IMG/VR virus record: IMGVR_UViG_3300032307_000369
Coordinates: 62,001 to 126,000 of that record
Length of the DNA: 64,000 nucleotides
Reading direction: 5' to 3' (one strand)
Part shown: positions 8,728 to 57,978 of the stretch, one piece after another
Layout of the letters: each line of letters begins with the position of its first letter
Numbering within the stretch: position 1 is the first letter of the stretch
The notes under the pieces: generated by a model
The model's database searches: none
Told to the model about the DNA's origin: nothing
Seen by the model: only the letters and a program-made list of their open reading frames with translations
Translations under genes and position numbers: made by a program

Positions 8728-8731
8728 TAAT

Positions 8732-8777
8732 ACATGCGGCCTTAGGCATTCATCCCGCAATATAAATTCTGCATGTC
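8732..8777 (+). ncRNA. candidate structured cis-regulatory leader of queD
   Basis: GC-rich island; tgcgg/ccgca stem, loop ggcat pairs with atgtc after an A-rich linker. Confidence 0.4.
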
Positions 8778-8800
8778 ATTGTTCATAAAGGAAAACAACA

Positions 8801-9340: not shown

Positions 9341-9346
9341 ACTTTC

Positions 9347-9867: not shown

Positions 9868-9876
9868 TTAATCCAG

Positions 9877-9905
9877 TTGACATTCAAGGGCATAGATGTT
9901 ATTAT
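9877..9905 (+). promoter_or_regulatory. sigma70-type promoter
   Basis: TTGACA-N17-TATTAT. Confidence 0.65.
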
Positions 9906-9933
9906 AACACTATGTCCTTTTTTATTGGTTATT

Positions 9934-11425: not shown

Positions 11426-11472
11426 AATGAATGTGGGCCACGAACTACAATAACAATAAGGTTCAATTAGTT

Positions 11473-14120: not shown

Positions 14121-14123
14121 AAT

Positions 14124-14513
14124 ATGGCTTATTCTTCACAAGTAATTGATCATTATGAAAACCCTAGAAACGTAGGTTCATTTGATAAAAATGATAATGA
14201 TGTTGGAACTGGTATGGTTGGAGCTCCTGCTTGTGGTGACGTTATGAAATTGCAAATTAAAGTTAATGAACAAGGTATTATTGAAGATGCAAAGTTTAAA
14301 ACTTATGGGTGTGGTAGTGCTATTGCTAGTTCTAGTCTTGTCACCGAGTGGCTCAAGGGCAAGAACTTGGATGAGGCACAAGCCATTAAGAACTCAGATA
14401 TCGCTACTGAACTTGCGTTACCGCCCGTTAAGATTCACTGTTCAATATTAGCAGAAGATGCTATCAAAGCCGCAGTAGCAGATTATAAAGCTAAACATGA
14501 TAACACTATCTGA
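14124..14513 (+). CDS. iscU: Fe-S scaffold protein
   Basis: [32 protein letters not shown]; all ligands intact. Confidence 0.97.
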
Positions 14514-14817
14514 ACAAGCTGCCAATAGGGTAAAAGCAACTCTAGAAAAGCGTGGTAAAGGACTAGGGATTAGATTAGGGGTCAAAACTACAGGTTGTAG
14601 TGGCATGGCCTATATGATAGAATTTGTAGATACTCCTACCACTGATGATATGAGCTTTGTTAGTTACGGAGTTCATGTGTTTGTAGATCCAAAAAGTTTA
14701 GCATACCTTGATGGTGTACAAGTGGAATGGGTTAAGAAAGGTCTTAATGAAGGCTTTGATTTTACCAATCCTAACGAACGTGATCGTTGTGGTTGCGGGG
14801 AAAGTTTTAGAGTTTAA
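14497..14817 (+). CDS. iscA: A-type Fe-S carrier
   Basis: [12 protein letters not shown]...CGCGESF. Confidence 0.95.
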
Positions 14818-15101: not shown

Positions 15102-15182
15102 GCCATTATTTACATTAAGTTTATAAAACTATAAGGTAAATAAAGTGGACAGTTGGTATATCACCCAAATTTGGAGTTAATA

Positions 15183-23717: not shown

Positions 23718-23754
23718 GATATCCTAAAATAAATAAGATGAACAGGAACGAAAA

Positions 23755-27171: not shown

Positions 27172-27174
27172 AAT

Positions 27175-33135: not shown

Positions 33136-33495
33136 ATGACTGTCAAAGGCAAATTGCTCCCGCTACATGACAAGGTAATGGTCACCAATATGAATTTTGG
33201 TGAAGGTAAAACTAAAACTGGCATAGTATTAACATCTGATGATGGCAAAAGCAGTGGTCTACATCCAAGATGGTGCCAAGTCAAATTTGTAGGGAACGAA
33301 CAAAAAGACATCAAAGTAGGGCAATGGCTGTTGATGCAACATGGTCGTTGGACACGTGGTATAAAATATGAAGAAGATGGCACTGAAATAACTCTACATA
33401 TGATAGACGTAGATGGTGTCTTGCTAGTAAGTAATGAAGAGCCTGAAACAGATGATTACCGAGTCAAAGTCGGTGCAATGAATTTCCAAACATAA
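33136..33495 (+). CDS. groES: GroES-like co-chaperonin
   Basis: PLHDKV.V, KTKTGIVL, VG....IKVG. Confidence 0.8.
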   Translation: MTVKGKLLPLHDKVMVTNMNFGEGKTKTGIVLTSDDGKSSGLHPRWCQVKFVGNEQKDIKVGQWLLMQHGRWTRGIKYEEDGTEITLHMIDVDGVLLVSNEEPETDDYRVKVGAMNFQT

Positions 33496-38559: not shown

Positions 38560-39195
38560 ATGAGTTTTACGTTTAATTTTACAAAACAGCAATTAGGGGA
38601 AATGATCCCAGGTAATCCATACCTAACTCATTGGTACGAAGCACTATCTGCTATTTTGCCTGAATATGAAATTAACACTCCACAACGAGTAGCGGCATTT
38701 ATTGCACAGTGCGCTCACGAGTCAGGTGGCTTTAAAGCATTAAAAGAAAATTTAAATTATAAGGCAGCAACACTGCGTAAAATTTTCCCTAAGTATTTTC
38801 CTACAGACGAAATAGCCGCAAAATATGCCGCAATGCCTAACAAGCAAGAAGCAATTGCTAATTTAGTTTATGCTAATCGTATGGGCAACGGTGGTCCAGA
38901 AACAGGTGACGGCTATCGTTACTGTGGTCGTGGGCTAATTCAATTGACTGGTAAAGAAAACTATTCATGGTTTGCAGCCAGTTTAGAAATGCCTGTTGAA
39001 GAAGTTCCAGAGTATCTAGGAACTTTTGAAGGTGCTGTACAAAGTGCTTGCTGGTTCTGGGAAACAAACAACTTAAATCAGTGGGCAGACAAGGGTGATA
39101 TTCTAACATTGACCAAACGAATTAACGGTGGAACAATTGGTTTAGAAGATCGTATTAAGCATTTTAATCACGCTGTTCATGTGCTAGGACACTAA
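38560..39195 (+). CDS. GH19 endolysin
   Basis: F.AQ..HESG.F...ENLNY, YANRMGN, GDGY.Y.GRGLIQLTG..NY, INGG..GL.DR. Confidence 0.93.
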   Translation: MSFTFNFTKQQLGEMIPGNPYLTHWYEALSAILPEYEINTPQRVAAFIAQCAHESGGFKALKENLNYKAATLRKIFPKYFPTDEIAAKYAAMPNKQEAIANLVYANRMGNGGPETGDGYRYCGRGLIQLTGKENYSWFAASLEMPVEEVPEYLGTFEGAVQSACWFWETNNLNQWADKGDILTLTKRINGGTIGLEDRIKHFNHAVHVLGH

Positions 39196-42110: not shown

Positions 42111-42148
42111 AAAGGCAGCTTGACAGTTGCCTTTCTTTGTTATATAAT
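42111..42148 (+). terminator. intrinsic terminator overlapping a sigma70 promoter
   Basis: aaaggcagc-TTGACA-gttgccttt plus T-rich tail; TTGACA-N17-TATAAT. Confidence 0.75.
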
Positions 42149-42154
42149 AGTGTT

Positions 42155-42997
42155 ATGAAAGATTATTATGGAATCCTTGGTGTCCCAAAAACTGCATCAG
42201 CAGACGACATCAAAAAAGCATATAGAAAAGCGGCTATGAAGCACCATCCAGACAGAGGTGGTGATCAAGCACGTTTTAAAGAAATTAACGAAGCACATGA
42301 TATATTATCCGACAAGGATAAACGTATGCAGTTGGATCAAGGTATTGATCCGCTAAATCCAAATCAAAGAACTTATAGAAGTCAAAATTTTAATCAAGGC
42401 TTCAATAATATGGAAGATATCTTTCAAAACTTTGGATTTGATTTTGGCTTTACTCCTCGAGGCTTTAGACCACAAGCCCCTACAAAGAATAAATCATTTA
42501 ATGTTCAAATGACGTTGACTCTAGAAGAAGCGTTTACGGGGATTAACAAAAACATTACAATTACTCATCCAGGCGGAGTTGGCAAAAACGTAGGAATTAA
42601 TATTCCACCTGGCATCGATAATGGCATGGCCATACGCTATGCTGGAATGGGCGATGACAGCATTAATGGTCTGCCTGCTGGTGATCTAACAATTATAATT
42701 AATATCGCTCCGCATCCAGTGTATGCTAGAGAAGGACTAAATTTATTAACTGATGTTACAGTTGACTGCTTTGATTCTATATTAGGAACAAATGCTGAAA
42801 TTGATACACTAGATGGTAGAAGGTTGCAGGTAGTAGTTCCTGCTGGAACACAGCCTGGAACTACCTTAGGATTAAAAAATGAAGGAATGCGAGACCAACA
42901 AGGTAATGTTGGAAAACTATATGTAAGAGTAAATGTTAGCGTTCCTAAAATTACTGATCCTATTAAATTGTCCTTAATCAAACAACTTAAAAATTAA
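42155..42997 (+). CDS. dnaJ: DnaJ/CbpA-like chaperone (no Zn finger)
   Basis: DYY.ILGV, HPD motif, G/F region, DnaJ C-domain. Confidence 0.92.
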   Translation: MKDYYGILGVPKTASADDIKKAYRKAAMKHHPDRGGDQARFKEINEAHDILSDKDKRMQLDQGIDPLNPNQRTYRSQNFNQGFNNMEDIFQNFGFDFGFTPRGFRPQAPTKNKSFNVQMTLTLEEAFTGINKNITITHPGGVGKNVGINIPPGIDNGMAIRYAGMGDDSINGLPAGDLTIIINIAPHPVYAREGLNLLTDVTVDCFDSILGTNAEIDTLDGRRLQVVVPAGTQPGTTLGLKNEGMRDQQGNVGKLYVRVNVSVPKITDPIKLSLIKQLKN

Positions 42998-43005: not shown

Positions 43006-43518
43006 ATGGAAAAACTTGTATTTCATCCAGATCCAATTTTAGAAGAACAAATGCCAGCATTTGATTTTGACAATCCTATTATGGATCCTAAAGAATTAGA
43101 AAAAGAACTATTAGCAATTATGTTTGCCAACAATGGCATTGGTCTTGCAAGTCCACAGATTGGCATAAGAACTAGAGTATTTGCAATGGGGCATTCACTT
43201 ATGCCAGAAGCAAGTCTTGCAATGTTTAACCCAACTGTAATTGATGCTAGCAATGAATTTCAAGATATAGAAGAAGGATGTTTGAGTTTTCCAAATATTT
43301 TTGCTAAAATTAAAAGACCTACTTGGATTGTAGTAAAATACAATACTAGTGATAATGAAGAACGAACAGAACGAATGGAGGGTTACAACTGTAAATGTTT
43401 TTTACATGAATTGGACCACTTAGATGGTATTGTAATGAAAGATCGTTTAAGTCAACTTAAATGGGCACTAGCCGTTAAAAAATCAAAAAAGGTAAAAAAT
43501 TATGTTAGAACCAAATGA
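43006..43518 (+). CDS. def: peptide deformylase
   Basis: GIGLASPQ, EGCLS, HELDH. Confidence 0.95.
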   Translation: MEKLVFHPDPILEEQMPAFDFDNPIMDPKELEKELLAIMFANNGIGLASPQIGIRTRVFAMGHSLMPEASLAMFNPTVIDASNEFQDIEEGCLSFPNIFAKIKRPTWIVVKYNTSDNEERTERMEGYNCKCFLHELDHLDGIVMKDRLSQLKWALAVKKSKKVKNYVRTK

Positions 43519-45784
43519 AGATCTAGAAAAGATCTTTGAACGTGCAATTCAATTATCTTTGGATAACCACCACCAATATATTACTTTAGAACATTTCTTA
43601 TATTGCATGGTTACTGACGAGTCATTTAACAGTGTACTTGTGGGTTATGGCACTGATGTTGAAGATTTAACTGCTAAGTTAGAAAACTATATTAAAAACG
43701 AGCTTGTTAGTATTGTTGATCAAACTTCAAATTCTAGACCAAAGAAAACTAATAGTGTTGAACGTATGCTTAATAGAGCATTTACGCACACACTGTTCTC
43801 TGGAAGAACAACCATTGAACCAATTGATTGCTTTTTAAGCATTTTAAATGAAAAGAAAAGTCATGCGGCATTTTATCTTCGCAGTGCTAATATTGAGAAG
43901 GACAAATTTATTGAGTATGTCAATAAAGAAATTGGCACAAGTAATCAAGACGGCGAAGAAGCCACAGTTCCAGAAAATAAACTTGAAGCATATATTGGCA
44001 ACTTCTGCACAAACCTAAATGCCAAGGTTAAAAATAAAGAGATTGATCCAGTTATTGGCAGGGACAAGGAACTGGAAGAAATGCAATTGGTACTTGCACG
44101 TAGACACAAGTCAAACGTAATGCTAATTGGTGATCCAGGTGTAGGTAAAACAGCTCTTGCTGAAGGTCTTGCACGTAAAATTGTTGAAGGTAACGTTCCT
44201 AAATTTATTCAAGATCACACAGTTTACACTTTAGACATTGGTGCTTTGTTAGCTGGTTCTAAATATCGTGGAGATTTTGAAGAGCGTCTTAAAAATGTTC
44301 TTACAGCTATCCAGAAAAAGAAAAAGTGCATTTTGTTTATTGACGAAGCACACATGATGAATGGTGCAGGAACAAGCAGTGGACAAAGTAATGACATGGC
44401 TAACATGTTAAAACCTGCACTTGCTAAAGGCGGACTAAAAGTTATCGCTAGCACTACATGGGAAGAATTCCGTAAGCACTTTGAAAAGGATCGTGCGCTA
44501 ATGCGTCGATTCCAACGTGTTATGGTTGGTGAGCCCGATGAAGTAACAACGATTAAGATTATCAAAGGTCTTAAAAAGTATTACGAAAAACATCATGGAT
44601 GCAAAATTACTAATCAAGCAATTATTGATTCTGTAAAATACAGTGTTAAGTACATGAGTGATAAAAAATTGCCTGATAAAGCAATTGATATTATTGACTG
44701 TGCTTGTGCTCGTTTCAAAGTACGTGATGAAGAAGGCGGCACAGTTGACCACGATGAAGTTGTATTCGAAGTCGCTAAAATGACTGGATTACCTTTAGAA
44801 CAAGTGGCTGCTAAGGATACAACAGTATTGCATGATTTAGAAGGCGATATTAAATCTGAAGTATATGGTCAGGACACTGCTGTAGATTCATTACTTGATA
44901 AAATTTATATTGCACAAGCAGGTCTTAAGAGCCATAATAAACCAATTGGTAGCTTCTTGTTTGTTGGTCCAACTGGATGTGGCAAGACTGAAACTGCTAA
45001 AGTATTGGCAAATAAGATGGGCATTAAGATGCTACGTTTTGACATGAGCGAGTTCCAAGAAAAACACTCAGTTGCTAAATTTATTGGTGCTCCTCCAGGC
45101 TACGTAGGTTTTGAAGACAATGCTGGACAATTGATTACACAGCTTCAAGAAAATCCTAACTGTATTCTATTGTTAGATGAAATTGAAAAAGCTCACCCAG
45201 ATGTTAGCAATGTTATGTTGCAACTTATGGACAACGGGTTTGTAACTGGCAGTAATGGCAAAAAAGCAGATGCACGTAATGTTATTATCATTATGACATC
45301 TAATTTAGGTGCTTCTGATAGTGAAAAATCTAATATAGGTTTTGGCAGTCAAGAAAAATTAGGAGAGATTAATAACGCTGTTAATAGATTCTTTGCTCCT
45401 GAATTCCGTAATCGTCTAGACGGTATTATTACATTTAAGAAACTTGAACACAGTGTAATGACAAAGGTAGTTGACAAGTTCATTAAAGAAATGAATTCGT
45501 TAATCACTGACAAGAATGTGTTTGTACAGCTAACTGAAACTGCTAAAAATCATCTTATTGACAAAGGGTTTGATAGCAAAATGGGTGCTAGACCAATGCA
45601 ACGTGTTATTGATGACGGTATTAAAAAGCCATTAAGCAGACAAATACTGTTTGGTAAGCTAGTAAATGGTGGCTTGGTCAAAGTTGACTTTGTTGATAAC
45701 CAACTAGTTTTTGATTATTTTGACCCTCTGCCAATTGTAAAAGATGTTGAAGCAAGTGCGGAAGAGAATGCAACACAAGATTAA
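43502..45784 (+). CDS. clpA: ClpA-type AAA+ unfoldase
   Basis: Clp N-domain, GDPGVGKT, KYRGDFE, GPTGCGKT, PPGYVG, IGF loop, no M-domain. Confidence 0.93.
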   Translation: MLEPNEDLEKIFERAIQLSLDNHHQYITLEHFLYCMVTDESFNSVLVGYGTDVEDLTAKLENYIKNELVSIVDQTSNSRPKKTNSVERMLNRAFTHTLFSGRTTIEPIDCFLSILNEKKSHAAFYLRSANIEKDKFIEYVNKEIGTSNQDGEEATVPENKLEAYIGNFCTNLNAKVKNKEIDPVIGRDKELEEMQLVLARRHKSNVMLIGDPGVGKTALAEGLARKIVEGNVPKFIQDHTVYTLDIGALLAGSKYRGDFEERLKNVLTAIQKKKKCILFIDEAHMMNGAGTSSGQSNDMANMLKPALAKGGLKVIASTTWEEFRKHFEKDRALMRRFQRVMVGEPDEVTTIKIIKGLKKYYEKHHGCKITNQAIIDSVKYSVKYMSDKKLPDKAIDIIDCACARFKVRDEEGGTVDHDEVVFEVAKMTGLPLEQVAAKDTTVLHDLEGDIKSEVYGQDTAVDSLLDKIYIAQAGLKSHNKPIGSFLFVGPTGCGKTETAKVLANKMGIKMLRFDMSEFQEKHSVAKFIGAPPGYVGFEDNAGQLITQLQENPNCILLLDEIEKAHPDVSNVMLQLMDNGFVTGSNGKKADARNVIIIMTSNLGASDSEKSNIGFGSQEKLGEINNAVNRFFAPEFRNRLDGIITFKKLEHSVMTKVVDKFIKEMNSLITDKNVFVQLTETAKNHLIDKGFDSKMGARPMQRVIDDGIKKPLSRQILFGKLVNGGLVKVDFVDNQLVFDYFDPLPIVKDVEASAEENATQD

Positions 45785-46906: not shown

Positions 46907-46989
46907 TATCAGTACTCGCTCAATTCAAATAAATACATGATAATAGAAATCATGGTACCTTTACCATGGGTGAGTAAGGCACATATATC

Positions 46990-47358
46990 ATGAAATTATT
47001 TGAATTTTTTAGTCAGAATACAACTGAGCCAGCAGAGAAGGAAAATGACGACCAAATGCGTAAGGACGTCATGGCATTCATACTCGATGATAATGACATC
47101 TATCGAGAGCATCTTCTCCCGCTAATACACAAGCACAACAAAAACATTAAAGATGAAGACTTGCGTAAAGATTACGTAAAAGTTGTTAACGACTGCTGCC
47201 TTCAATTTTATAAAGAAAAAGAATTAAAAACAGATCCAAATGATCTTTTCCCAAAGGCAATGAGGAATGAGATGGTAAAACAACTTATCAAGATCAATAA
47301 AGAAAATATTATCACTAAAAAGAAGAAAAAAGATGAAGATACGAGATCTGTTATTTGA
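46990..47358 (+). CDS. hypothetical protein with N-terminal tag (MKLFEFF)
   Basis: TAAATA at 46930; first gene of the tagged cluster. Confidence 0.65.
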   Translation: MKLFEFFSQNTTEPAEKENDDQMRKDVMAFILDDNDIYREHLLPLIHKHNKNIKDEDLRKDYVKVVNDCCLQFYKEKELKTDPNDLFPKAMRNEMVKQLIKINKENIITKKKKKDEDTRSVI

Positions 47359-47719
47359 GGGCAGGATTGATCCTTCTCTTTTAAATCAATTCCTAAAACA
47401 TTGCTCTGAAGAATTAGGTCTTGAATCGTTACCTAAAATTAATCTTATAGATAATAAAGAGTATTCAATTACACATAAGTCATTTGGCGGGTACAGCCCA
47501 GATGAAAAATCAATAATACTTGCTACTGAAGGTAGACACCCAGTTGATGTGTTTAGAACGCTTGCACATGAACTAACACATTACAAACAAGACTTAGATG
47601 GACAACTTGAAGGCGACGATGTGGGTGCCACTGGTAGTCCACAAGAAAATGAAGCTAACTCTGTTGCTGGTATAATAATGCGAAATTTTGGTCAGAAGTT
47701 TCCAGAAGTATTTGAATAA
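47333..47719 (+). CDS. zincin-like metallopeptidase with N-terminal tag (MKIRDLLFE)
   Basis: RTLAHELTHYKQ...ENEAN. Confidence 0.7.
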   Translation: MKIRDLLFEGRIDPSLLNQFLKHCSEELGLESLPKINLIDNKEYSITHKSFGGYSPDEKSIILATEGRHPVDVFRTLAHELTHYKQDLDGQLEGDDVGATGSPQENEANSVAGIIMRNFGQKFPEVFE

Positions 47720-47727
47720 GGACCAAT

Positions 47728-48744
47728 ATGCGTATTAGAGATCTATTTGAAGGCGGGTGGGACACTACCAAAACACAAAATACTGTTTTACATCCTAAAA
47801 TTGTAAGTGTTGCTCTGTCTGTAGTAGATCAATTTGTTATTGACTTTAATAATTTTATTAAAAATAAAAACATTGGTCAAATTAAACGTGGCAGACCAAC
47901 AGGCAGTAGTGCATATCACGAACAAGATGCTATCGAAAAGCCTGAAACAATTTACGGCGACATAGACTTGCAAATGATTGCTCCACCAGTTGAAGGGTTA
48001 ACTTACGGGCAGTTTAGTGGTTATTGGAATAAGTTAGCAGATGATTTTGTTAAAACAGCTAATCCAACTTATGTAGACACAGCAGACAGCAAGCCAGGTC
48101 ATCCAATTTTTCAAGTTGGTAAACAAGACTATGTACAAGTTGATTTTATGTGGCATGAACAAAAAATGGCAGACTGGGGAGCAACTCGTGTAACTCCAGA
48201 ACGTGGTGTCAAAGGATTATTGTCAGGTAACATGTACAGTGTGTTTGGCGAAATACTTGATATGAGCATACAACATGCTGGCGTACAACTTAAAGTGATT
48301 GATGATCAGCGTGTACCATTTAGTAAACAAAAAGATACGCAGACTATTACAGTAACAACAAATCCAAAAACATTTATACTAGATGTTTTCATGTATTTGG
48401 CAAAACGTATGGGTGTAAACAATCCAAAGATTGATCCTATGCTTAAACAGTTTTCAGGTAATGACATTAATGATGTTAAAATAAGCAAACTAGTTAATGG
48501 TATGAAAGGATTTGCCTCAAGTGCCGAAGCAAGCGGTATGTTTGGTAACGGGGATTTACAAAATTTCAACTCTGCTCAAGATTTTATGAATAAGTTTTGG
48601 CAACGTTACGAAGAAAAAGCACAAATTGACATTGCTGGCAAAAAGCGTGACAAAGCACAGACCCCAGACGCTATTGCACGTGCCAATGCAGACAGAGAAA
48701 AGATCCAAAAAGGTCTAGATATGGTTAAGGGATATTTCCAATGA
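47728..48744 (+). CDS. Pol-beta-fold nucleotidyltransferase-like protein with tag (MRIRDLFE)
   Basis: TGS...GDIDL...VQVDF. Confidence 0.65.
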   Translation: MRIRDLFEGGWDTTKTQNTVLHPKIVSVALSVVDQFVIDFNNFIKNKNIGQIKRGRPTGSSAYHEQDAIEKPETIYGDIDLQMIAPPVEGLTYGQFSGYWNKLADDFVKTANPTYVDTADSKPGHPIFQVGKQDYVQVDFMWHEQKMADWGATRVTPERGVKGLLSGNMYSVFGEILDMSIQHAGVQLKVIDDQRVPFSKQKDTQTITVTTNPKTFILDVFMYLAKRMGVNNPKIDPMLKQFSGNDINDVKISKLVNGMKGFASSAEASGMFGNGDLQNFNSAQDFMNKFWQRYEEKAQIDIAGKKRDKAQTPDAIARANADREKIQKGLDMVKGYFQ

Positions 48745-49118
48745 GAGCAAAAGAATTTATTACTGAACTTAAAGCGCCAACAATAACCAACAGACAAGGT
48801 AAGTCAACCACTGCAATACATCTTTACACTGATGCTGAAAGACGCAATAGTGATTATGTGTCATATCGTTTAGGTATGGCTGTGGCGTGTACTGATGGAA
48901 CGAACGATCCAGACATGGATGGCAAAAGTTGGGTAGACAAGAGTAAAACAACACATCCATATACTTCTCAAGAACAAGAGATGTTAAAGAAAGCCTATAA
49001 GGTTGTAGGTGCAAAATATACAGATTTGACCAAAGGTGATATGAGAAGTCAAGAACTGAATACTACTAACGTTGTTAGTCCTGTTGCTAAACCCAAACGA
49101 AACAAATACGGCGTGTAA
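48741..49118 (+). CDS. hypothetical protein with tag (MRAKEFITE)
   Basis: ATGA coupling. Confidence 0.65.
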   Translation: MRAKEFITELKAPTITNRQGKSTTAIHLYTDAERRNSDYVSYRLGMAVACTDGTNDPDMDGKSWVDKSKTTHPYTSQEQEMLKKAYKVVGAKYTDLTKGDMRSQELNTTNVVSPVAKPKRNKYGV

Positions 49119-49130
49119 CGAGAGTTAAAA

Positions 49131-49970
49131 ATGAAAATATTTGAACTGTTAATTGAAAGTGGTAAACGACTTGCTAGTCAAGGAGTTGAAGTCTCTAGAG
49201 TAAACAAAGAAGACTTCAATGCCGCTAAAAATGTTTTAAATCCTATTCTAATCAAAGCAGGAATTAAAGCAGGATGGACTGCTGGCGGAGCTGGTAGTTT
49301 TGATCCAGAGCATGATTATGGTGGCGGTGGTAGAGAGGACAGTGGTGATATTGATATTATGATTGATCCAACTGACTTGGTAAAACAATTTCCTCCTAAT
49401 GTTGAAGCATATAACGCCGCAAGTAAAAAACCAATTGGTCCAAAAGCAATGGCATCAGCCATGGCGGATCCTGCTAAAAAAGCAAAAATTGAGATGAGTG
49501 CAAGTAAATGGGCACTTGCAACTTATATGTCAAAGAACGGATTTATAACTGACCCAGGAACGTTAACTGTTGAATACACTGCTGGTGGACAAAGTTTCTC
49601 AGTTGATTTAATTATACGTCCACGTAATGCATGGCCGTTGCACACACATGATTTTGTAACTGACCCAAAAATGCGTGGTGGCGATTTATGGACACAGATG
49701 TATCCAGTACTTGCTAAACTTGCAAGCCAAAAAACATTTGTTGATCCAAAAACAGGCGAAGAAAAAGGCAACCTACAATTCAGCCCAGACAGAGGATTGG
49801 TAGACAGAGATACTGATAAAGTCATTGCAATCAACAAAGATGACATTGCTAAAATATTGTTACACCCACAAGCAACAGCTAGAGATTTAGCAAGTATGAC
49901 AGGTATTAGAAATGCGTTGTCTAAACAGCCTGAAAAACTGTCAAAACTACCACAGCCACAAGAGCAATAA
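49131..49970 (+). CDS. Pol-beta-fold nucleotidyltransferase-like protein with tag (MKIFELLIE)
   Basis: AGS...SGDIDIMI...FSVDL. Confidence 0.65.
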   Translation: MKIFELLIESGKRLASQGVEVSRVNKEDFNAAKNVLNPILIKAGIKAGWTAGGAGSFDPEHDYGGGGREDSGDIDIMIDPTDLVKQFPPNVEAYNAASKKPIGPKAMASAMADPAKKAKIEMSASKWALATYMSKNGFITDPGTLTVEYTAGGQSFSVDLIIRPRNAWPLHTHDFVTDPKMRGGDLWTQMYPVLAKLASQKTFVDPKTGEEKGNLQFSPDRGLVDRDTDKVIAINKDDIAKILLHPQATARDLASMTGIRNALSKQPEKLSKLPQPQEQ

Positions 49971-49978
49971 ATACACTT

Positions 49979-52381
49979 ATGAATTTATTTGAACTGTTCT
50001 CACCCAATAAACAAATTATTATGGAAGGCATTGACCATCCAGAAGATCTCATTATCTCGCAAGGTAGTGCAGGTGCTGACAGGGTATTAAAAGATTTAGC
50101 AAGTTTAGAAAAAGATCCAAGTACAGTTACAGTTAAATGGGACGGCTTTCCAGCAGTAGTATTTGGTAGAGACAAAGGCGGAAACTTAGTGTTTATGGAT
50201 AAGCACATGTACGAAAAAGTATCTGCTGGCAAAATGGATTTTATGTCCATTAAAGATTATGATGAAAGTCGTGGAGCCAATCGTTCAAGTCTAATTGACC
50301 AAGAAAGTGTAATACGTCCGCTATTGAGCAAAATTGTTCCTAACGTTCGAGATCAATATTGGATGGGCGACTTAATGTGGACTGGCACCCCGCCAGTTAG
50401 TAATGGTGCATTTGTCTTTAAACCAAATACGGTTGAATATCAAGTTGACATAGATCAAAGTCCTGGAGTTGGCGATTCATTAAGCGACAAGATTGCTAGA
50501 AGCGGGGCAGGAATTGCAGTACATACTTTTATTCCAGGATTAGGACAACCTGATCAACCACTTGTTGGTCTTAAAGGATTACCAGAAGATGCTGGCATTA
50601 CTTTCCTAGTAGGAGAGATGAAGGACAAACCACGTGTTGCAATTAATTCAGAATTATTAAATCAAACGCAACAAATAATTAATGCAAATAGAAGTGCTGT
50701 GGATAAATTCTTTGTTGATCTAACTGCAATGAAAGGCAAGAGTGTTGTAACTGCCATGGGCCCTTTCATCACACGCATGTTAGAAGACAATGATATTAAA
50801 GGCAACATTGTTCCTAGATTCTTAGAATTTTTAGGAGAGCGTTTAACTGACAGTGCTAAACAAAAAATGTTAGGCACTAACAAAGATGGTTGGCTTTATC
50901 AAGAACAAGGCGGTGCTCCAGGACTACTTGGCATTTGGACCATGTGGGCCGCTATTACTGAATTAAAATTAAATATTAAACAACAAATTGATACGCAACA
51001 GCAAGGTAGTAAGATACGTGCTGTTACTGATGGAATTAACGCACATGAAGGTTATGTGTTTGGTGCTGGTAAAGACAAATTAAAACTAGTTGATAGATTA
51101 GGATTTAGCAGAGCAAACTTTGCTAAACATAAAGTTAGTGATGAAGAAGTGGCTGAAAAAAGTAAAATGCCGTTGGCAGTTTTTTGCTTTGGACGTATGA
51201 ATCCGCCAACAATGGGACACGGTCTTGTTTTAAATAAAACAATTGAACTTGGCAAACAAAATGCATTTATATTTTTAAGTAATAGTGTTGACCCTACAGA
51301 AAATCCTTTACAGCCATCAATAAAAGCAAAATTTGTTGAACAAATTTATCCTAATACCAAAGGACACATTGTTACAGAATTTGTCCAAAATCCAATATAC
51401 GCTGCCAACTGGTTATATGCTAAAGGCTATCGAAATATGGCATTTGTTGCTGGCAGTGATAGATTGGGTAAAGAAAAGGGCAGTATTGAAAAAATACTTA
51501 ACAGTTGGAATAGCGGTCCAGTTAGAAGTACCGATCCTGCTGGCGCTAGAGATTTCGTACAAATACAATACATAAGTGCAGGTGATAGGGATCCTGATAG
51601 TGAAGGAGTTTCAGGCTTCAGTGGATCTAAAGCACGTCAAGCAGTGACCGCAAATAACGAACAACAGTTTCAACAATATACTGGAATTGGTAATGATATC
51701 GTTGTTAATGGTAAAACACTATATCAGTCAGTTAGAGAAGGTATGGGTATAAAAGATCAAAAACCAACTGCTCCAGCCGTGCCTGCTAAACAACCTACTA
51801 TCAATGTACCAAATCAAAATGTCACTACTAAACAACCTGTTGAAAAGAAAGTTCCTGGACAAGCCCCAATGCAAAAAACAAATCAAGCAGACTTGGTTGA
51901 GAGTGTGCTAAGAGACAAAGAAGATTATTATGCCAAACGTAAGGCATTACAAGATATTCAATTGGATCCAAATACTGCTAAAGATGAAGAATTAAGAAAA
52001 GAACTTATTAGACGTAAACACGCTTTAGAACGTGAAGCCAAAAAGAAAGGTGTTATTGCTGAATCAATTATTAGATCAATTATTGATGAAGCACCAATCG
52101 AGATGGATCCACAAAATCCAAATGACCCAATGGTTATGCCACCTGGTCTTAATCCAGGAAAACTTAGCTATCGTAAACAACGTGCGGCTGCACAATTGGC
52201 AGATTTAGCTCGTATGGCTTCACAGGCAAATGAAAAGAATAGTGCTATAATGTGGGATAGCATTGTTAAACATTTTCCAGAGTTAGAAACAAACATTCGC
52301 AGTATACAACATGGCATGCAAGAATTAGAAAAAGTTAGACGTGCAGGCGGAAAACAAAGTAGAGGAATTGAAAAAATATGA
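49979..52381 (+). CDS. RNA-ligase-like domain + HIGH-type nucleotidyltransferase + small C-terminal modules, with tag (MNLFELF)
   Basis: KWDG, GDL, EGYV, KL(V)DR; FGRMNPPTMGH, AGSDR, SGSKAR. Confidence 0.7.
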   Translation: MNLFELFSPNKQIIMEGIDHPEDLIISQGSAGADRVLKDLASLEKDPSTVTVKWDGFPAVVFGRDKGGNLVFMDKHMYEKVSAGKMDFMSIKDYDESRGANRSSLIDQESVIRPLLSKIVPNVRDQYWMGDLMWTGTPPVSNGAFVFKPNTVEYQVDIDQSPGVGDSLSDKIARSGAGIAVHTFIPGLGQPDQPLVGLKGLPEDAGITFLVGEMKDKPRVAINSELLNQTQQIINANRSAVDKFFVDLTAMKGKSVVTAMGPFITRMLEDNDIKGNIVPRFLEFLGERLTDSAKQKMLGTNKDGWLYQEQGGAPGLLGIWTMWAAITELKLNIKQQIDTQQQGSKIRAVTDGINAHEGYVFGAGKDKLKLVDRLGFSRANFAKHKVSDEEVAEKSKMPLAVFCFGRMNPPTMGHGLVLNKTIELGKQNAFIFLSNSVDPTENPLQPSIKAKFVEQIYPNTKGHIVTEFVQNPIYAANWLYAKGYRNMAFVAGSDRLGKEKGSIEKILNSWNSGPVRSTDPAGARDFVQIQYISAGDRDPDSEGVSGFSGSKARQAVTANNEQQFQQYTGIGNDIVVNGKTLYQSVREGMGIKDQKPTAPAVPAKQPTINVPNQNVTTKQPVEKKVPGQAPMQKTNQADLVESVLRDKEDYYAKRKALQDIQLDPNTAKDEELRKELIRRKHALEREAKKKGVIAESIIRSIIDEAPIEMDPQNPNDPMVMPPGLNPGKLSYRKQRAAAQLADLARMASQANEKNSAIMWDSIVKHFPELETNIRSIQHGMQELEKVRRAGGKQSRGIEKI

Positions 52382-53205
52382 AAATTAAACAACTTTTAGA
52401 CGAAGCTAAAAAAGGTGTTAAAGCACCTAAGCATACAGTAAAGCCTAGAAACTTTGTTGCCAAAAATGCTATTGCTACTACTAGTGGAGCTGGCGCACAC
52501 AAAGATAAAAAGAAAGCTGAAAAGCAAGGCGATGTCAAACACAAGAAACAAGCTGTTCCCGTAGATGAACAGACTGTAGCAGAAGAGAAACAAAAAGGTG
52601 TTGATGGCAAAGCCTGCTGGAAAGGCTATAAGCGCATGGGCACTAAGAAGAAAGGTGGCAAGACTGTAGACAATTGTGTGCCAATGAATGAAAGTTTTGA
52701 TCCTGAATACGATGACGAAGCTGGAATGGCTGACAATAATCTTGAAACTCTAAAAAGAGCAGTAGAAGGCTTAGACGACATGATCAATGAAGGCGATAAC
52801 TTGCCTGAATGGTGTCAAGAAAAAATTGCAGTAGCAAAAAGCATGTTGATCTCAGTTTGGGACTACATGCAAAGTGAAGAAAACAGTATGTCTGAAAATC
52901 AAAGAAATCCTGATCTAATGAGTCAAAGTGATTATGACCGATATCAACAAGGTCAAATGGACCAACAAAAACGTGACTTTAAACGTGACGAAATGGAACA
53001 TGAACTTGGTCACGAAGAAAGAGGAATGTATTATGTTGTGATTGCTAAAAATGGCAAATGGGAACATACTAAAGCACAGCCAAGGCAAGAAGGTATGAAT
53101 GCCGCACAACGAATTATCAGTGCGTTACATGCAAAGTATCCAAGTATGCACTTGGGCATGGTAGGTCCTGATGGCAAAGTATATAATTATGGCAAGGGCA
53201 AATAA
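52378..53205 (+). CDS. modular/polyprotein-like protein with tag (MKIKQLLDE)
   Basis: unrelated short modules separated by hydrophobic-x-E sites. Confidence 0.65.
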   Translation: MKIKQLLDEAKKGVKAPKHTVKPRNFVAKNAIATTSGAGAHKDKKKAEKQGDVKHKKQAVPVDEQTVAEEKQKGVDGKACWKGYKRMGTKKKGGKTVDNCVPMNESFDPEYDDEAGMADNNLETLKRAVEGLDDMINEGDNLPEWCQEKIAVAKSMLISVWDYMQSEENSMSENQRNPDLMSQSDYDRYQQGQMDQQKRDFKRDEMEHELGHEERGMYYVVIAKNGKWEHTKAQPRQEGMNAAQRIISALHAKYPSMHLGMVGPDGKVYNYGKGK

Positions 53206-53206
53206 A

Positions 53207-53641
53207 ATGGATAAGTTACAGTTAGCATTAAAAACAGCATTTGCAAGTGAATACTCGTTTGCATTAAAAGCACAAAATTTTCACTGGAATGTGGAAGGCA
53301 TGTTCTTTACTCAATTTCATGATTTGTTTGGCGACATTTACAATGAAGTATATGGGAATATTGATGCGTTTGCAGAGAATATTAGAAAAGCAAAAGCATA
53401 TACCCCTGCAAGTTTAACACGTTTCAGTATGTTGAGTGTAATTCAAGATGAGACTGAAATGTTAGAGGCACCAGAAATGTGTGCAGAACTTTTATCTGAT
53501 TCTGATAAGATGGCAGAAATTCATAGATTAACTTTTCAATTATCTGAAGAAGCAGGTGAACATGGTCTTAGTGACTTTTTAGCAGGAAGACAAGATGCCT
53601 TCCGTAAACACTCTTGGATGTTAAGAGCCACATTGAAATGA
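53207..53641 (+). CDS. dps: Dps-family ferritin-like protein
   Basis: NFHWNVEG..F...H..F...Y, D..AE.IR, K..WML. Confidence 0.92.
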   Translation: MDKLQLALKTAFASEYSFALKAQNFHWNVEGMFFTQFHDLFGDIYNEVYGNIDAFAENIRKAKAYTPASLTRFSMLSVIQDETEMLEAPEMCAELLSDSDKMAEIHRLTFQLSEEAGEHGLSDFLAGRQDAFRKHSWMLRATLK

Positions 53642-54309
53642 AAATCAAAGAGCTATTAGAACAGAAACAAACTTCCAATGAGGATATTGGTAAAATAGCC
53701 AGTACCGTTGCGGATAAAGTGAGTGATGTTGCTAAGCCAGTTATAGATAAAGTAAGTGACTTTACTAAACCAGTTATAGATAAAGTAAGTGACTTTGCTA
53801 AACCAGTAGTGGACAAAGTAAAAGACGTTGCACGTCCTTATGTAGACAAACTTTCAACTAGTGTTAAAGACGTGCTGCCTAAAGATGTTGGAGATAAGGT
53901 TGTACATTATGCAGGTGATGGACATGACCATCCACCAAATATGCAATTTGCCAGCGACAAGTATAGAGAAAGAATGTCAAATTTAGATCCATCTTTTAAA
54001 GACGCACTCTATAGAGCGGCAAAAGATTCTGGTCTACCAATGCAGGTTACCAGTTCTCATAGATCTCAAGCAGAACAAGACGACTTATATAGACGATGGT
54101 TAAAAGGCGAACCTGGTATTTTTAAACCAAGTAAAAATGTTGGAAGCCATGGCGGGTTTGCTGTGGATATGAATGCAAAAGATGTTGCTAATTTACACGC
54201 ATGGTTAAAAAAGAACGACCCAGATGGTACCAAGTATGGACTACAAACTGGAATTGAATTTGGTGACCCTGTACATGTCCAATTACGAAATTTTAATAAA
54301 CGAGTATGA
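53638..54309 (+). CDS. M15-like Zn peptidase with tag (MKIKELLE) and 11-aa repeats
   Basis: TS..RS..EQ..LY, SH...AVD, DPVHVQ. Confidence 0.75.
   Translation: MKIKELLEQKQTSNEDIGKIASTVADKVSDVAKPVIDKVSDFTKPVIDKVSDFAKPVVDKVKDVARPYVDKLSTSVKDVLPKDVGDKVVHYAGDGHDHPPNMQFASDKYRERMSNLDPSFKDALYRAAKDSGLPMQVTSSHRSQAEQDDLYRRWLKGEPGIFKPSKNVGSHGGFAVDMNAKDVANLHAWLKKNDPDGTKYGLQTGIEFGDPVHVQLRNFNKRV
53713..53850 (+). repeat. 33-bp coding tandem repeat (about 4 copies)
   Basis: DKVSDVAKPVI / DKVSDFTKPVI / DKVSDFAKPVV / DKVKDVARPYV. Confidence 0.85.
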
Positions 54310-54599
54310 AACAGTATAAGATTACTACTGATAATATTGTCAATGACAGTCCAGACGATTGTTATATAGACCCTGCAGATCCTTTAAACGAAATAAAGGC
54401 TCTGCAATATCTTGGTGGTATCAATTCTCTAAATAGATTGCAAGAATATAAAGGCATGCAAGGTAGTAATATTAGCGCAACTGGTTCAGAAAAAGGAAGA
54501 TTACAAAGAGAACATAATATTAAACCTGGTACTCCTGAATGGTTTAAACTATGGTTTAGCTTACCTTATATGACTGGTGAGAGGCCTATTAAAAAATGA
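54306..54599 (+). CDS. hypothetical phage protein
   Basis: IKPGTPEWFKLWFS. Confidence 0.65.
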   Translation: MKQYKITTDNIVNDSPDDCYIDPADPLNEIKALQYLGGINSLNRLQEYKGMQGSNISATGSEKGRLQREHNIKPGTPEWFKLWFSLPYMTGERPIKK

Positions 54600-55729
54600 A
54601 AATAAGAGATTTATTAGAGTTATCAAAAACTAGTCCACTAGGCAGAGCACTTGACCAATTTAGTGGTTCAATTGACACTGAAAAAATTGGCAATCAAATA
54701 TCCAATGTGTTCAAACCAGACACAGTTGCTGATACTAATCGTTCAACCAATATCACTTCTGCTCCTGGTACGTCATCATCTAGTAAACCTGTTGCATCTG
54801 CGCCTAAGACAGACAACGTATTATCTGATGTAGAAAGTGAACTTGATAGACAAGGAATCACAGATCCATTTGTTAGAAAATCTATTCTAGCTAAAACTGG
54901 GCAAGAGTCAGGATCTAAATATAGAGTTACTGAAATTCCTTTCAAAAATACAAGTAATGATACTATTAGATTGCGATTACCACAACTACAAGGTATGAGT
55001 GATGAAGAACTCAATGCCTTAAAACAAGACAAAGTGGCGTTTTTTAACAGGGCATATGGATATAAAGGCAACACGTTAAACAATAACGAACCAGGTGATG
55101 GTTGGAAATATCGAGGTCGTGGTCTAACTGGTATCACTGGAAAAGTAAATTATCAAAGAGTTGACGATGCACTAGGGCTTAAGGGCGAGTTGGTTAAAAA
55201 TCCAGATCTATTGCTAGATCCTGAAATTGATAAAAAAGCATCTGTTTGGTACTACAAGGCAGCTGGTGCAAACAATGTAAAATTTGACAATCAAGAAGAT
55301 GCAAATAAATGGGCCATACACAAGGCTGGCGGGAACATGTATGCTCCTGGTACTAAATTAGGAAATATAGCACTAGATGACATGAACAAAAGGACTGCTG
55401 TAATTGCTACTACGGGAGCCGCAGTTTTAGCTGGTCCTACTTTATTAAATAAAGCAAAAGATATAATTGGAAACTTAAAAGGTACTGCTGGCAATGTAGT
55501 TAACACTGCAAAAAATGTTGGTGTAAGAACTGCTGCCACTGCCGCACTAGCAGGTAGTTTAGGTGGAGGTGGTGGGAGTGGTGGAGGATACTATACCAGT
55601 AGAACTTCTGAAGAACCAGAAATTGTCGTTATAATTAACGGCAAACGTAAAAAATTTAAAACTAAAGCAGAAGCATTGCAGGCAATTAAGTTAGCTAAAC
55701 AACAAGGATTGGAAGTGTCAAATGGGTAA
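54596..55729 (+). CDS. second GH19-like glycosidase with tag (MKIRDLLE)
   Basis: QESG, GDGWKYRGRG...ITGK.NY, NPDLL. Confidence 0.75.
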   Translation: MKIRDLLELSKTSPLGRALDQFSGSIDTEKIGNQISNVFKPDTVADTNRSTNITSAPGTSSSSKPVASAPKTDNVLSDVESELDRQGITDPFVRKSILAKTGQESGSKYRVTEIPFKNTSNDTIRLRLPQLQGMSDEELNALKQDKVAFFNRAYGYKGNTLNNNEPGDGWKYRGRGLTGITGKVNYQRVDDALGLKGELVKNPDLLLDPEIDKKASVWYYKAAGANNVKFDNQEDANKWAIHKAGGNMYAPGTKLGNIALDDMNKRTAVIATTGAAVLAGPTLLNKAKDIIGNLKGTAGNVVNTAKNVGVRTAATAALAGSLGGGGGSGGGYYTSRTSEEPEIVVIINGKRKKFKTKAEALQAIKLAKQQGLEVSNG

Positions 55730-56330
55730 GCCAGAAGTTTATTTAGATATGGACGGAGTTATTGCAGACTTTTTTACAGAGTATGCTAAACTTGCGGGTA
55801 TTGAATCAGGAAACTATAGAGATATTCCCCCGGCTAAAACAGATCCTACATTAAACAAAATGATAGGTACTAACTTTTTTGCACGATTACCAAAATGCAG
55901 AAATGCAGATGCACTAGTAGACTTAATAGTAAAAACGTTTGGTAGTTTTAATATCTGTTCAAGTCCTTTGCGTGGTGATCATGATAACAGTGAAAAACAG
56001 AAAAAGATTTGGCTTAACAATAATCTAAAATATCAACCTAAAGATGTTGTAATTACGCCAAACAAAGCCAAATGGGCCAAGCAAAAAGATGGTACTCCAA
56101 ACATCCTAATTGATGACCGAGGGAGTAATATTAGTTCTTGGGAAGCCGCTGGAGGTATTGGTATCAAATATCAAGCAGACGAAGATAGCCTACAGGTGAT
56201 AGTGCAAGGAATTAAAAGAGCGTTTTCTGTCATAAAAGGCGAACAAGAGCATAATCCGCAACAATTAAAAAGTTTAGATCGTAGCAGTGGTAACTTAATT
56301 GCTACCAGTGGTGATAAAGACTCCCATTAA
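55722..56330 (+). CDS. HAD-family 5'(3')-nucleotidase
   Basis: YLDMDGVIADF, CSSP, K..W, LIDD. Confidence 0.85.
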   Translation: MGKPEVYLDMDGVIADFFTEYAKLAGIESGNYRDIPPAKTDPTLNKMIGTNFFARLPKCRNADALVDLIVKTFGSFNICSSPLRGDHDNSEKQKKIWLNNNLKYQPKDVVITPNKAKWAKQKDGTPNILIDDRGSNISSWEAAGGIGIKYQADEDSLQVIVQGIKRAFSVIKGEQEHNPQQLKSLDRSSGNLIATSGDKDSH

Positions 56331-56339
56331 GGACATATT

Positions 56340-56576
56340 ATGAAAATTCAAGAAATTATTACAGAAACTGCTACAGCTGGTTCAACAAGTGCTAGTAATA
56401 TTGCTAGTACTGGGAATAGTCCTCATGTTGCTGTTGGAAGTCCAGCAGTAATCAAACGTTGGGGTGGAAGTCCAGGAAAAATGGGCAAGAGCCCTAGTCC
56501 AACTAAAACAGAGCCACAGGATGCTGAAGATAACCCAGTGACCAATCCTAAAGTTGGCAACAACTTAATTTCTTAA
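56340..56576 (+). CDS. small low-complexity protein with tag (MKIQEIITE)
   Basis: AAGGA SD; E-TATAGSTSASNIA. Confidence 0.65.
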   Translation: MKIQEIITETATAGSTSASNIASTGNSPHVAVGSPAVIKRWGGSPGKMGKSPSPTKTEPQDAEDNPVTNPKVGNNLIS

Positions 56577-56599
56577 TAAATATAGTATTGGAGAACAAA

Positions 56600-57901
56600 A
56601 TGCCTTTTAAATCAGCTAAACAGAAAAAAACAATAGATGCGGCAGCACATAACCCTGCTTTTGCAAAGAAAGTGGGGATCAAAGTTAGCGATGCAAAGAA
56701 GATGTCAGCACACGGCAAAGGCCAAACTAAGTTTGATGAAGCAAAACTAGATGAATTATCTCCAAAAACATTAACTTCTTATAAAGATAAGGCACGTAGC
56801 CAAGTGCGAGCAAGTGCTGGCGCTAATCCTAATAACTCACACGTAGCAACTGATCCTAAAATTGCAAATCGTGCTCGTGGCGCAGTCAAGGCAGATAATC
56901 GTTTAAATGGGTTTGGTCCTGCTAAGAAAGTTAAGGAAGCGACTGATACAGTAGAAAAAGATGAAAAGGGCAATGTCAAATCATGGAAGCATGAGGGCGA
57001 CTGGAAGAAAACAAATAATAAAGAAGGACGAGGAAAAGTGACTAATTTAAGCGACAAGGCTCGTAGACAAACAGCAAAAATGAGCAAAGCTGAAACTGAA
57101 ATGGCTGAAGCATTTGAACAAGCATTAGAAGGTTCTGGATCTCCAACAGTTACACATGGTCCAAACAAAGGCAAAAAATGGAGTCCAGAAACTCCAGGCC
57201 CAACAAACCCAAGTTACAAGGGAATAGACAAAGGTATTCCTAGTCCACCAGATGGTGCAACTGCTCCACCTCCAGGATATAAACCTCCAAAGTCAATGAA
57301 AAAGGCAGAAGTGACTCCATCAGTAAGTACAGACGATTCTGCAATGGCAGAAGAACGTTCTTCAAAGAAGGTGATGAAAAAATTACGTGCCAAACACATG
57401 ATGGAATCAATTCGAGTATTAGGACAATTGATTGCTGAAGCTAAAAAGAGTGCAAAAAAGAAAAATAGCAAAGTTGAAGAAGACCCAAATGAAGGTAACG
57501 CATTTGGTAAAGCAGTAGCTGATGCTAAAAAAGATGGCATCCAAAAAGGTGAAAAAGTTAAAGTAGGTGGTAAAGAATACCCAGTTAAAGAAGCTGCCAA
57601 CGATAAATGCAATCATACTCCAAAAGGTAAAAAGTGCCCAGTACACGGTTTAAAAGAATGTGGCTCAATGTATGAAGGCAATGATGGTAATTTAGCCAAC
57701 AATGCTAAACCTTACGACAAAGTGACAAAGGGCGATGTAGTTGCTGGTAGATTAGGCAAAGACGAAATGGGTGGAAAATCCAAAAAGAAGAAAGTTAAAG
57801 AAGGATGGACCCATGATACACTAGCCGCTCAATTGTTTGAGAGTGGAGACGAGTATATGGTCGCACTACGAAACAAATTGGATAAACAGCTAAAAGGTTA
57901 A
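56600..57901 (+). CDS. basic polyprotein-like protein
   Basis: TAAATA at 56577, GGAG SD; Lys-rich modules separated by hydrophobic-x-E. Confidence 0.65.
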   Translation: MPFKSAKQKKTIDAAAHNPAFAKKVGIKVSDAKKMSAHGKGQTKFDEAKLDELSPKTLTSYKDKARSQVRASAGANPNNSHVATDPKIANRARGAVKADNRLNGFGPAKKVKEATDTVEKDEKGNVKSWKHEGDWKKTNNKEGRGKVTNLSDKARRQTAKMSKAETEMAEAFEQALEGSGSPTVTHGPNKGKKWSPETPGPTNPSYKGIDKGIPSPPDGATAPPPGYKPPKSMKKAEVTPSVSTDDSAMAEERSSKKVMKKLRAKHMMESIRVLGQLIAEAKKSAKKKNSKVEEDPNEGNAFGKAVADAKKDGIQKGEKVKVGGKEYPVKEAANDKCNHTPKGKKCPVHGLKECGSMYEGNDGNLANNAKPYDKVTKGDVVAGRLGKDEMGGKSKKKKVKEGWTHDTLAAQLFESGDEYMVALRNKLDKQLKG

Positions 57902-57913: not shown

Positions 57914-57936
57914 AACAGGGCACAAGTTGCCCTGTT
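57914..57936 (+). terminator. hairpin / probable terminator
   Basis: aacagggca-caagt-tgccctgtt. Confidence 0.7.
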
Positions 57937-57950: not shown

Positions 57951-57978
57951 TTGACTTCTTTATAAATGATAGTATAAT
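57951..57978 (+). promoter_or_regulatory. sigma70-type promoter
   Basis: TTGACT-N16-TATAAT. Confidence 0.7.

Follow-up and report, generated by a model that had tools for sequence, protein, structure and literature searches.

This study concerns ten neighbouring genes whose otherwise unrelated products all begin with the same short peptide, here called the tag. They lie in a 64-kb window (the whole stretch of DNA that was analysed), which is bases 62001-126000 of a 245,550-bp metagenomic contig (JGI 3300032307 Ga0335334_1402155, identical to IMGVR_UViG_3300032307_000369). The sequence identifies the source as an uncultured jumbo phage of the T4 superfamily, with a DNA polymerase whose nearest matches are those of Sinorhizobium phage Phosso (50%) and Agrobacterium phage Atu_ph07 (46%), followed by those of Salicola SCTP-2 and the Rak2/GAP32-like phages. 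The clade is abundant and widespread in metagenomes and uncultured, and homologues of one of the tagged genes number more than 700, on metagenomic contigs of up to 354 kb. The cluster is located between the gene for a ClpA-like ATPase and the DNA polymerase operon, and it looks like a transcription unit of its own because its last gene is followed by a terminal hairpin and then by a strong sigma-70-like promoter. The features of the cluster and its flanks, in window coordinates, are as follows (aa, amino acids; ORF, open reading frame).

38560..39195, + strand: untagged GH19 endolysin candidate, then membrane-protein genes (lysis cassette), given for context
43502..45784, + strand: ClpA/ClpB-like double AAA+ ATPase, about 1.2 kb (two genes) upstream of the first tagged gene
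46929..46935, + strand: ATAAATA within the 83-nt gap that precedes the first tagged gene, a candidate late-promoter core on weak evidence
46990..47358, + strand: tagged gene 1, 122 aa, acidic; no Pfam or PHROG match
47333..47719, + strand: tagged gene 2, 128 aa, putative small metallopeptidase; HExxH motif, weak matches
47728..48744, + strand: tagged gene 3, 338 aa, predicted Pol-beta-fold nucleotidyltransferase; structure model with Foldseek, invariant motifs
48741..49118, + strand: tagged gene 4, 125 aa (family FAM3); orthologues differ strongly in the linker that follows the tag Glu
49131..49970, + strand: tagged gene 5, 279 aa, predicted Pol-beta-fold nucleotidyltransferase; structure model with Foldseek
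49979..52381, + strand: tagged gene 6, 800 aa, predicted DUF6267 and cytidylyltransferase domains and a long C-terminal region; Pfam, PHROG
52378..53205, + strand: tagged gene 7, 275 aa, Lys-rich N-terminal half; matches only PHROGs of unknown function
53171..53641, + strand: untagged ferritin/Dps-like gene; Pfam Ferritin, 3.4e-16
53638..54309, + strand: tagged gene 8, 223 aa, predicted M15/VanY-like peptidoglycan peptidase; PHROG endolysin, 1.9e-8, Pfam VanY weak
54306..54599, + strand: untagged 97-aa gene; ORF
54596..55729, + strand: tagged gene 9, 377 aa, predicted GH19 lysozyme/chitinase-like domain; PHROG 181 endolysin, 1.7e-27
55722..56330, + strand: untagged NT5C-like 5'-deoxynucleotidase; Pfam NT5C, weak
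56340..56576, + strand: tagged gene 10, 78 aa; the sequence after the tag resembles the capsid protein N-arm
56600..57901, + strand: untagged 433-aa Lys-rich protein, last gene of the unit; ORF
57914..57936, + strand: GC-rich, terminator-like hairpin with a poor T run, directly after the last gene
57951..57978, + strand: strong sigma-70-like promoter, TTGACT-16-TATAAT, 11/12, which starts the DNA polymerase operon

We searched the six-frame translation of the window with the pattern M-[KRN]-h-x-[DEQ]-[LFI]-[LFI], where h is a hydrophobic residue. The search returned 11 matches, 10 of which are the ATG starts of listed genes, all on the + strand (46990, 47333, 47728, 48741, 49131, 49979, 52378, 53638, 54596 and 56340, a span of 9.4 kb), and these are the ten starts that an earlier note on this DNA had singled out; the remaining match is an internal Met at 5393. 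The refined consensus is M-[KR]-[IL]-x-[DE]-[LFI]-[LFI]-(x)-E, with a length of 8-9 residues. The earlier note had proposed that enrichment be tested against shuffled starts, and among 157 non-overlapping ATG ORFs of at least 60 aa, taken from 148 kb of the source contig, the motif stands at the first ATG in 10, compared with a mean of 0.11 matches and a maximum of 2 when residues 2-12 were shuffled in 2000 trials. Only 2 of 884 internal Met positions match the motif, and one of these is an eleventh tagged gene with a doubled Met, which encodes 179 aa with no family match and stands alone between TerC and guanylate cyclase genes outside the window, about 62 kb from the cluster (L045:2842, contig 46836). 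Beyond the window, the contig was covered by stepwise exact-protein look-ups and protein-pattern scans. An additional 30 kb or so of the contig yielded no more copies of the tag, and the tag scan as a whole screened about 178 kb, from about 24 kb to 202 kb of the contig. The replication, fibre, lysis, Fe-S and chaperone genes in the window are without the tag, much as the earlier note had read them. The shared start is far beyond chance.

Apart from the tag the proteins have nothing in common, as had been claimed: BLASTP on the bodies only, with the first 12 residues removed, places the ten in ten separate families. The starts themselves are well defined, in that public gene calls give identical starts for the last five tagged genes (the public call for gene 53638 is the ATG and not the upstream TTG), most tagged starts have an individual Shine-Dalgarno-like site, and several overlap the preceding stop codon. 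At the DNA level the 60 nt upstream of the ten genes are unrelated to each other, and the tag codons vary synonymously at nearly every position (AAA/AAG, ATA/ATT/ATC, CGA/AGA, GAT/GAA/GAG, CTG/CTA/CTT/TTA). Because of these two observations the conservation is that of a peptide and not of DNA, and a DNA repeat or cassette is largely ruled out. The tag ends with a candidate cleavage motif (L/I-x-E, then a small residue) in eight of the ten window genes. Among 158 distinct tags collected from homologues, a sample dominated by two protein families, 143 have Glu as residue 8 or 9, and G, S or A comes next in 123 of them.

Relatives at 66-95% identity have kept the cluster and the tags and have changed the cargo content, that is, the set of tagged proteins. 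The 338-aa protein (47728) has 736 metagenomic homologues, and among the 120 best of these, with body identities of 67% or more throughout, 105 bear the tag at residue 1, in many sequence versions. Tagged variants of this protein with 383-535 aa retain the tag as residue 1 and carry an extra domain (e.g. GNAT) inserted behind it. In orthologues of the 279-aa protein (49131) the length of the tag varies by one residue, and the body, which starts [SA]-G-K-R-L, stays in register after the Glu; homologues of the same protein at 30% identity have no tag. The cyanophage DUF6267 homologues of 49979 are likewise without a tag and begin at about residue 15, where the body of 49979 begins. Orthologues of the first tagged gene (46990, family FAM8) keep the tag, the Lys-rich 52378 family (FAM2) ranges from 166 to 483 aa among relatives, and in relative L009 a tagged glucosaminidase clusters within the family of the GH19 gene 54596. 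In three relatives at 87-95% identity all that is left of the M15 gene is an ORF of 16 codons, which still opens with the tag (L005:13901, L016:13901 and L018:11511), and in the same three the Lys-rich neighbour has 353 aa, compared with 275 aa here; such a remnant of a tagged gene points to recent cargo turnover. In the AlphaFold2 (AF2) models of the 338-aa and 279-aa proteins the predicted local distance difference test score (pLDDT; 89 and 83 for the whole models) falls below 50 at the tag residues only, at residues 1-11 and 1-12 respectively, and the remainder of each model is confident. The tag is therefore a modular, strictly N-terminal element.

Walking along the contig led to a head module (locus L074), about 70 kb from the tag cluster, at contig 181-192 kb. 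A tblastn search with the head proteins of T4 and pEa_SNUABM_47 against the first 48 loci had returned none from this clade. The genes of the module are in T4 order: a 797-aa protein, Portal_T4, an 86-aa protein, a 280-aa protein, Peptidase_S77, a 364-aa protein and Gp23. The Peptidase_S77 protein (L074:3914-4540, minus strand) is 32% identical to the T4 prohead protease gp21 (E 7e-19) and keeps the L-G-E-x-x-H-P and G-V-S-S-R-G blocks, and the capsid protein (Gp23 type, L074:1600-2787, minus strand) is 36% identical to T4 gp23. All three kinds of head protein bear N-terminal h-x-E sites resembling the end of the tag (a slash marks the presumed cut): L-R-E/S in the protease, L-F-E/S-G in the scaffold-like protein, and L-A-E/S at residue 41 of the capsid protein, directly ahead of the conserved N-arm. 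The scaffold-like protein is the 364-aa product encoded between protease and capsid genes; it has no family match, and its 25 h-x-E sites are what one would expect if it were degraded. In the 78-aa protein (56340), residues 4-23 match capsid residues 36-55 with 55% identity over 20 residues (BLASTP, E 1e-4), with tag-T-E/T-A-T-A-G-S-T-S-A aligned to Y-L-A-E/S-A-T-A-G-S-T-S-A of the capsid protein across its predicted cut. This small protein could be a decoy substrate of the protease, a mimic of the capsid arm or a part of the core.

Taken together, these results make it probable that the shared start is a T4-type capsid-targeting and cleavage peptide, as the earlier note had suggested. The support comes from the gp21-family protease, the h-x-E/S sites of the head proteins and the residue-1 position of the tag in fusions, and further from the untagged distant homologues, from the fit of the T4 gp24 propeptide and from a homologue in S-CREM2 virions, the last two of which are described below. 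Because the shared start looks like the label by which T4 loads proteins into its head, it is probable that a kit of enzymes travels into the host together with the phage DNA; our confidence in delivery and early action in the host is lower than in targeting and cleavage. Under this mechanism the tagged proteins would be made during prohead assembly, and the short amphipathic tag would dock the cargo onto the scaffolding core. The gp21-family prohead protease would cut after the tag Glu, where the next residue is usually Gly, Ser or Ala, and the trimmed cargo would then be retained in the head together with the DNA and pass out through the tail when the next cell is infected. Docking, retention within the virion and any early activity in the host are steps that we infer. 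It might be that the neighbouring ClpA-like unfoldase helps in loading. The fullest form of the proposal, in which a portable tag of 8-9 residues loads a changeable kit of ten or more proteins that act before phage gene expression, for example in cell entry, in repair or modification of nucleic acids or in counter-defence, is one that we put forward tentatively.

The identity of the cargo was examined gene by gene. The two nucleotidyltransferases named in the earlier note gain support at the level of the fold. With Foldseek, the model of the 338-aa protein finds family-X polymerases and CdnC, a CD-NTase (cGAS/DncV-like nucleotidyltransferase), at an expectation value (E) of about 1e-3 and template modelling (TM) scores of 0.3-0.36, and that of the 279-aa protein finds Pol lambda, mu, beta and TdT at E about 1e-3 and TM 0.35-0.43; the Foldseek probability is about 1 for both. 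A G-[GS] motif followed by D-x-D is invariant in the alignments of the two families (A1 and A2), in the form G-S-S...G-D-x-D for the 338-aa protein. Neither protein has a Pfam match, even at E up to 5. We consider the products of 47728 and 49131 to be supported, by their models, as Pol-beta-fold nucleotidyltransferases at the level of the fold, with no specific enzyme assigned. PDB sequence searches with three large cargo proteins gave nothing useful. The two wall hydrolases claimed in the earlier note also stand, since the products of 53638 and 54596 fall into the PHROG endolysin families listed above; both are supported as predicted cell-wall hydrolases, and their Pfam matches are below the gathering score. 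The GH19 protein of 54596 shares 27% identity with the untagged GH19 endolysin candidate of the lysis cassette (38560). Because the phage has that separate candidate, the tagged wall hydrolases are extra copies, which fits a role at cell entry.

The other two assignments of the earlier note are weaker. The putative metallopeptidase (gene 2, 47333) has an HExxH motif and a weak match to the PHROG 87 metallo-protease (E 3.9e-4), along with one to Pfam DUF6782 (E 0.0036). The product of 49979, described as a ligase-like fusion, is a fusion of DUF6267 (Pfam, 1.4e-29) and cytidylyltransferase (PHROG cytidyltransferase, 3e-39). The ligase-like reading is drawn from the motifs K-W-D-G (of the type K-x-D-G) and E-G-Y-V, both invariant in the DUF6267 region in alignment A3; the search of PDB with the DUF6267 profile gave no match, and the solid part of the assignment, as judged from these profile matches, is DUF6267 plus the cytidylyltransferase domain. 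The Lys-rich protein of 52378 is possibly a DNA-binding internal protein.

Among the alternatives, the one that survives best is that the tagged proteins are mostly accessories of the prohead core or scaffold, like gp67 and gp68 of T4, which act in assembly and are degraded or retained instead of being delivered. The T4 core proteins also start with L/I-x-E sites, and the products of 46990, 48741 and 56340 are small and have no enzyme signature, one of them (56340) resembling the capsid N-arm. For some of the small proteins such a role is likely, and these may be prohead-core parts rather than effectors. It is not likely for the enzymes: seven of the ten proteins are sizeable, and six of these have enzyme-like domains for which no part in assembly is evident; the set of cargo proteins changes from one close relative to the next, unlike core assembly parts; and the genes lie some 70 kb from the head module. 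As an account of most of the cluster we regard this explanation as unlikely.

A less likely explanation is that the tag is a signal for the proteostasis machinery of the phage (ClpA-like, ClpX, ClpS, ClpP, DnaK/DnaJ), for timed degradation, unfolding or hand-over to chaperones. N-terminal peptides are often what is recognised in Clp substrates, the ClpA-like gene is only about 1.2 kb upstream of the cluster, and the phage encodes ClpP, ClpS, ClpX, HSP70, HSP20 and DnaJ. A degron, however, needs no h-x-E/small-residue site, and that site is found here in the capsid protein, the scaffold and the protease as well; what ClpS recognises at an N-terminus is a free L, F, Y or W and not Met-Lys; Phosso has a syntenic Clp ATPase without tagged genes beside it; and the propeptide of T4 gp24, the vertex protein of the capsid, fits the tag consensus. 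We would be still more surprised if the tag addressed its proteins elsewhere, to the membrane, to the periplasm or through a CsgG-like channel of the phage. Two cargo proteins are predicted to act on peptidoglycan, and CsgF, CsgG and curlin-like proteins are encoded by the phage, but most of the cargo (the nucleotidyltransferases and the cytidylyltransferase) is predicted to act on cytoplasmic substrates, and curli substrates first use a Sec signal. The tag is not a Sec, Tat or lipoprotein signal, because it has 8-9 residues, two or three of them acidic, and no hydrophobic core. Finally, it is hardly credible that the start is a cassette working only as DNA, whether as a junction for recombination or shuffling or as a translation-initiation module, and that the peptide itself has no function, for although T4-type genomes shuffle genes by means of short repeated regulatory cassettes and several of the starts overlap the previous stop codon, the 158 different tags keep the same residue classes, and one-residue indels in the tag leave the cut site and the body in register.

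Several observations weigh against a T4-type capsid-targeting and cleavage peptide. The tags of 46990 and 49979 have no Glu at position 8 or 9, which agrees with the earlier note that two copies lack the last Glu; that description is incomplete, as both proteins have L-F-E at residues 3-5, and 49979 has in addition I-M-E at residues 14-16, directly ahead of its conserved body, so that its propeptide probably comprises 16 aa ending in I-M-E. The tag has 8-9 residues and not 10, with hydrophobic residues at 3, 6 and 7 and not at 4, 7 and 8, and because of this length and register it is a variant and not the tag of the T4 internal proteins, the gp24 propeptide being the T4 peptide that fits instead. 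The cargo consists mostly of enzymes, unlike the small basic proteins of T4. About 67 kb of the contig lies outside the tag scan. No cultured relative was found to have the cluster genes, since neither the cluster by megablast nor the two nucleotidyltransferases by tblastn gave a match in 50,697 phage records, and Phosso, the closest isolate, has the syntenic Clp ATPase and DNA polymerase genes with no tag-bearing genes in between. The detection of the S-CREM2 homologue in virions, discussed below, rests on 3 peptides, and for the present phage packaging, cleavage and ejection are what we infer.

The transcription signals count on the same side. The earlier note had reported late motifs before the cluster, and TATAAATA, the canonical T4 late promoter, occurs once in the window compared with 7.3 copies expected, so that the argument holds only for the shorter ATAAATA, and weakly. 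ATAAATA is strand-biased, with 10 copies on the + strand and 0 on the - strand; 6 copies are located 12-34 nt before gene starts, those of the fibre genes included, and copies are found before or inside the cluster, some of them so near a start codon that they could not drive the gene in question. The late promoter of the clade may be of the cyanomyovirus type.

Other parts of the genome deserve mention. The window holds an unusually full proteostasis set, composed of ClpP, a GroES-like protein, DnaJ, peptide deformylase and the ClpA-like ATPase (6635-7255, 33136-33495, 42137-42997, 43006-43518 and 43502-45784), and to the left of it loci from the same or a near-identical phage (L048/L077) add ClpS, ClpX, HSP70, HSP20, a second Cpn10 and ribosomal protein S21. 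L045/L048 (contig about 34-54 kb) carry pigment genes of a sort known from cyanophages, for heme oxygenase and a ferredoxin-dependent bilin reductase, and in addition genes for CsgF, CsgG and curlin-like proteins, TerC, a CHASE2-guanylate cyclase and a Gad2-like protein. Very large fibre-like genes are present at 15153-31416 of the window (2854, 1138 and 1413 aa) and in L047/L076 (4747 and 3381 aa), some of them with CBM_5_12, Peptidase_S74 or pectate-lyase-like domains. The region 11431-14817 of the window reads by its sequence as an Fe-S assembly run (ABC ATPase and SufB/D-like, cysteine desulfurase-like, IscU-like and IscA-like proteins).

The capsid-targeting sequence (CTS) of T4 is the classic portable packaging signal, known from a few small proteins in close relatives of T4. 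The same logic seems to be used here on a much larger scale, with one tag on ten unrelated genes, mostly for enzymes. If this is true, jumbo phages of the T4 superfamily deliver kits of enzymes with their DNA, a simple sequence rule becomes available to predict virion-delivered proteins in metagenomic phage genomes, and the engineering of phage heads gains a second, shorter packaging tag. Several protein families of unknown function would then be likely first-contact factors in infection. We found no earlier description of the tag or the cluster in the literature, and a review of jumbo phages (PMC7824862) describes no such tag.

The closest known system is that of T4, in which the CTS is carried by internal proteins IPI-III and Alt, and gp21 is the protease. 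According to the T4 record, internal proteins II and III have a common 10-residue start that ends in I-A-E, and gp24, gp21, gp22, gp67, gp68 and Alt all have L/I-x-E within their first ten residues. The first ten residues suffice for targeting and processing in T4, where foreign proteins provided with them are packaged at 20-200 copies in each head and then pass into the host (PMC9026906, PMC3012670, PMC5694885); targeting depends mostly on positions 4 and 7, and processing on positions 8 and 10 (PMC9026906). As in T4, the phage studied here has a short N-terminal peptide on unrelated proteins, ending in hydrophobic-x-Glu before a small residue, it has genes for a protease of the gp21 family, a scaffold-like protein and a capsid protein of the Gp23 type, and its cargo set varies between relatives; the T4 cargo Alt is also an enzyme. 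In arrangement the two differ, with ten clustered genes and one elsewhere in the present phage as against three internal-protein genes at two loci and Alt at a third in T4, and the present system is known from sequence alone. The T4 gp24 propeptide is an even better match in form, since its K-I-N-E-L-L-R-E, cleaved by gp21 according to the T4 record, fits the consensus [KR]-I-x-[DE]-L-L-x-E with an offset of one residue; the difference is that it is a peptide on a capsid shell protein and not on cargo enzymes.

Two other groups of phages offer comparisons. In the giant phages of the phiKZ/SPN3US type a prohead protease related to that of T4 processes many head-internal proteins, enzymes among them, and these are believed to pass into the host (PMC5694885), but the phages belong to a different lineage, and their propeptides mostly exceed 100 residues and share no short tag. 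In the T4-like cyanophage S-CREM2, the cytidylyltransferase gp154 was detected in virions by mass spectrometry (PMC10665884). This protein (L075:4609-5469) is 27% identical over 196 residues (E 3e-13) to the cytidylyltransferase domain of 49979, and its first ten residues are CTS-like, with an aromatic residue at 4, Phe 7, Leu 8 and Glu 10, then Ala (L-T-E/A). It is a homologous cytidylyltransferase with a CTS-like 10-mer in virions, and it differs from the present case in being a single gene with a tag of the T4 10-residue type, which its authors did not describe. In HTVC008M, like S-CREM2 a marine T4-like phage (L038:5962-7194 and 8365-10155), the DUF6267 homologue starts M-Y-N-D-L-L-V-E, and the CTS-like starts of both this protein and S-CREM2 gp154 are not noted in the published annotations. 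Compared with T4, what is new here is the form of the tag, the ten-gene scale and the enzyme-rich, changeable cargo; the principle is the same.

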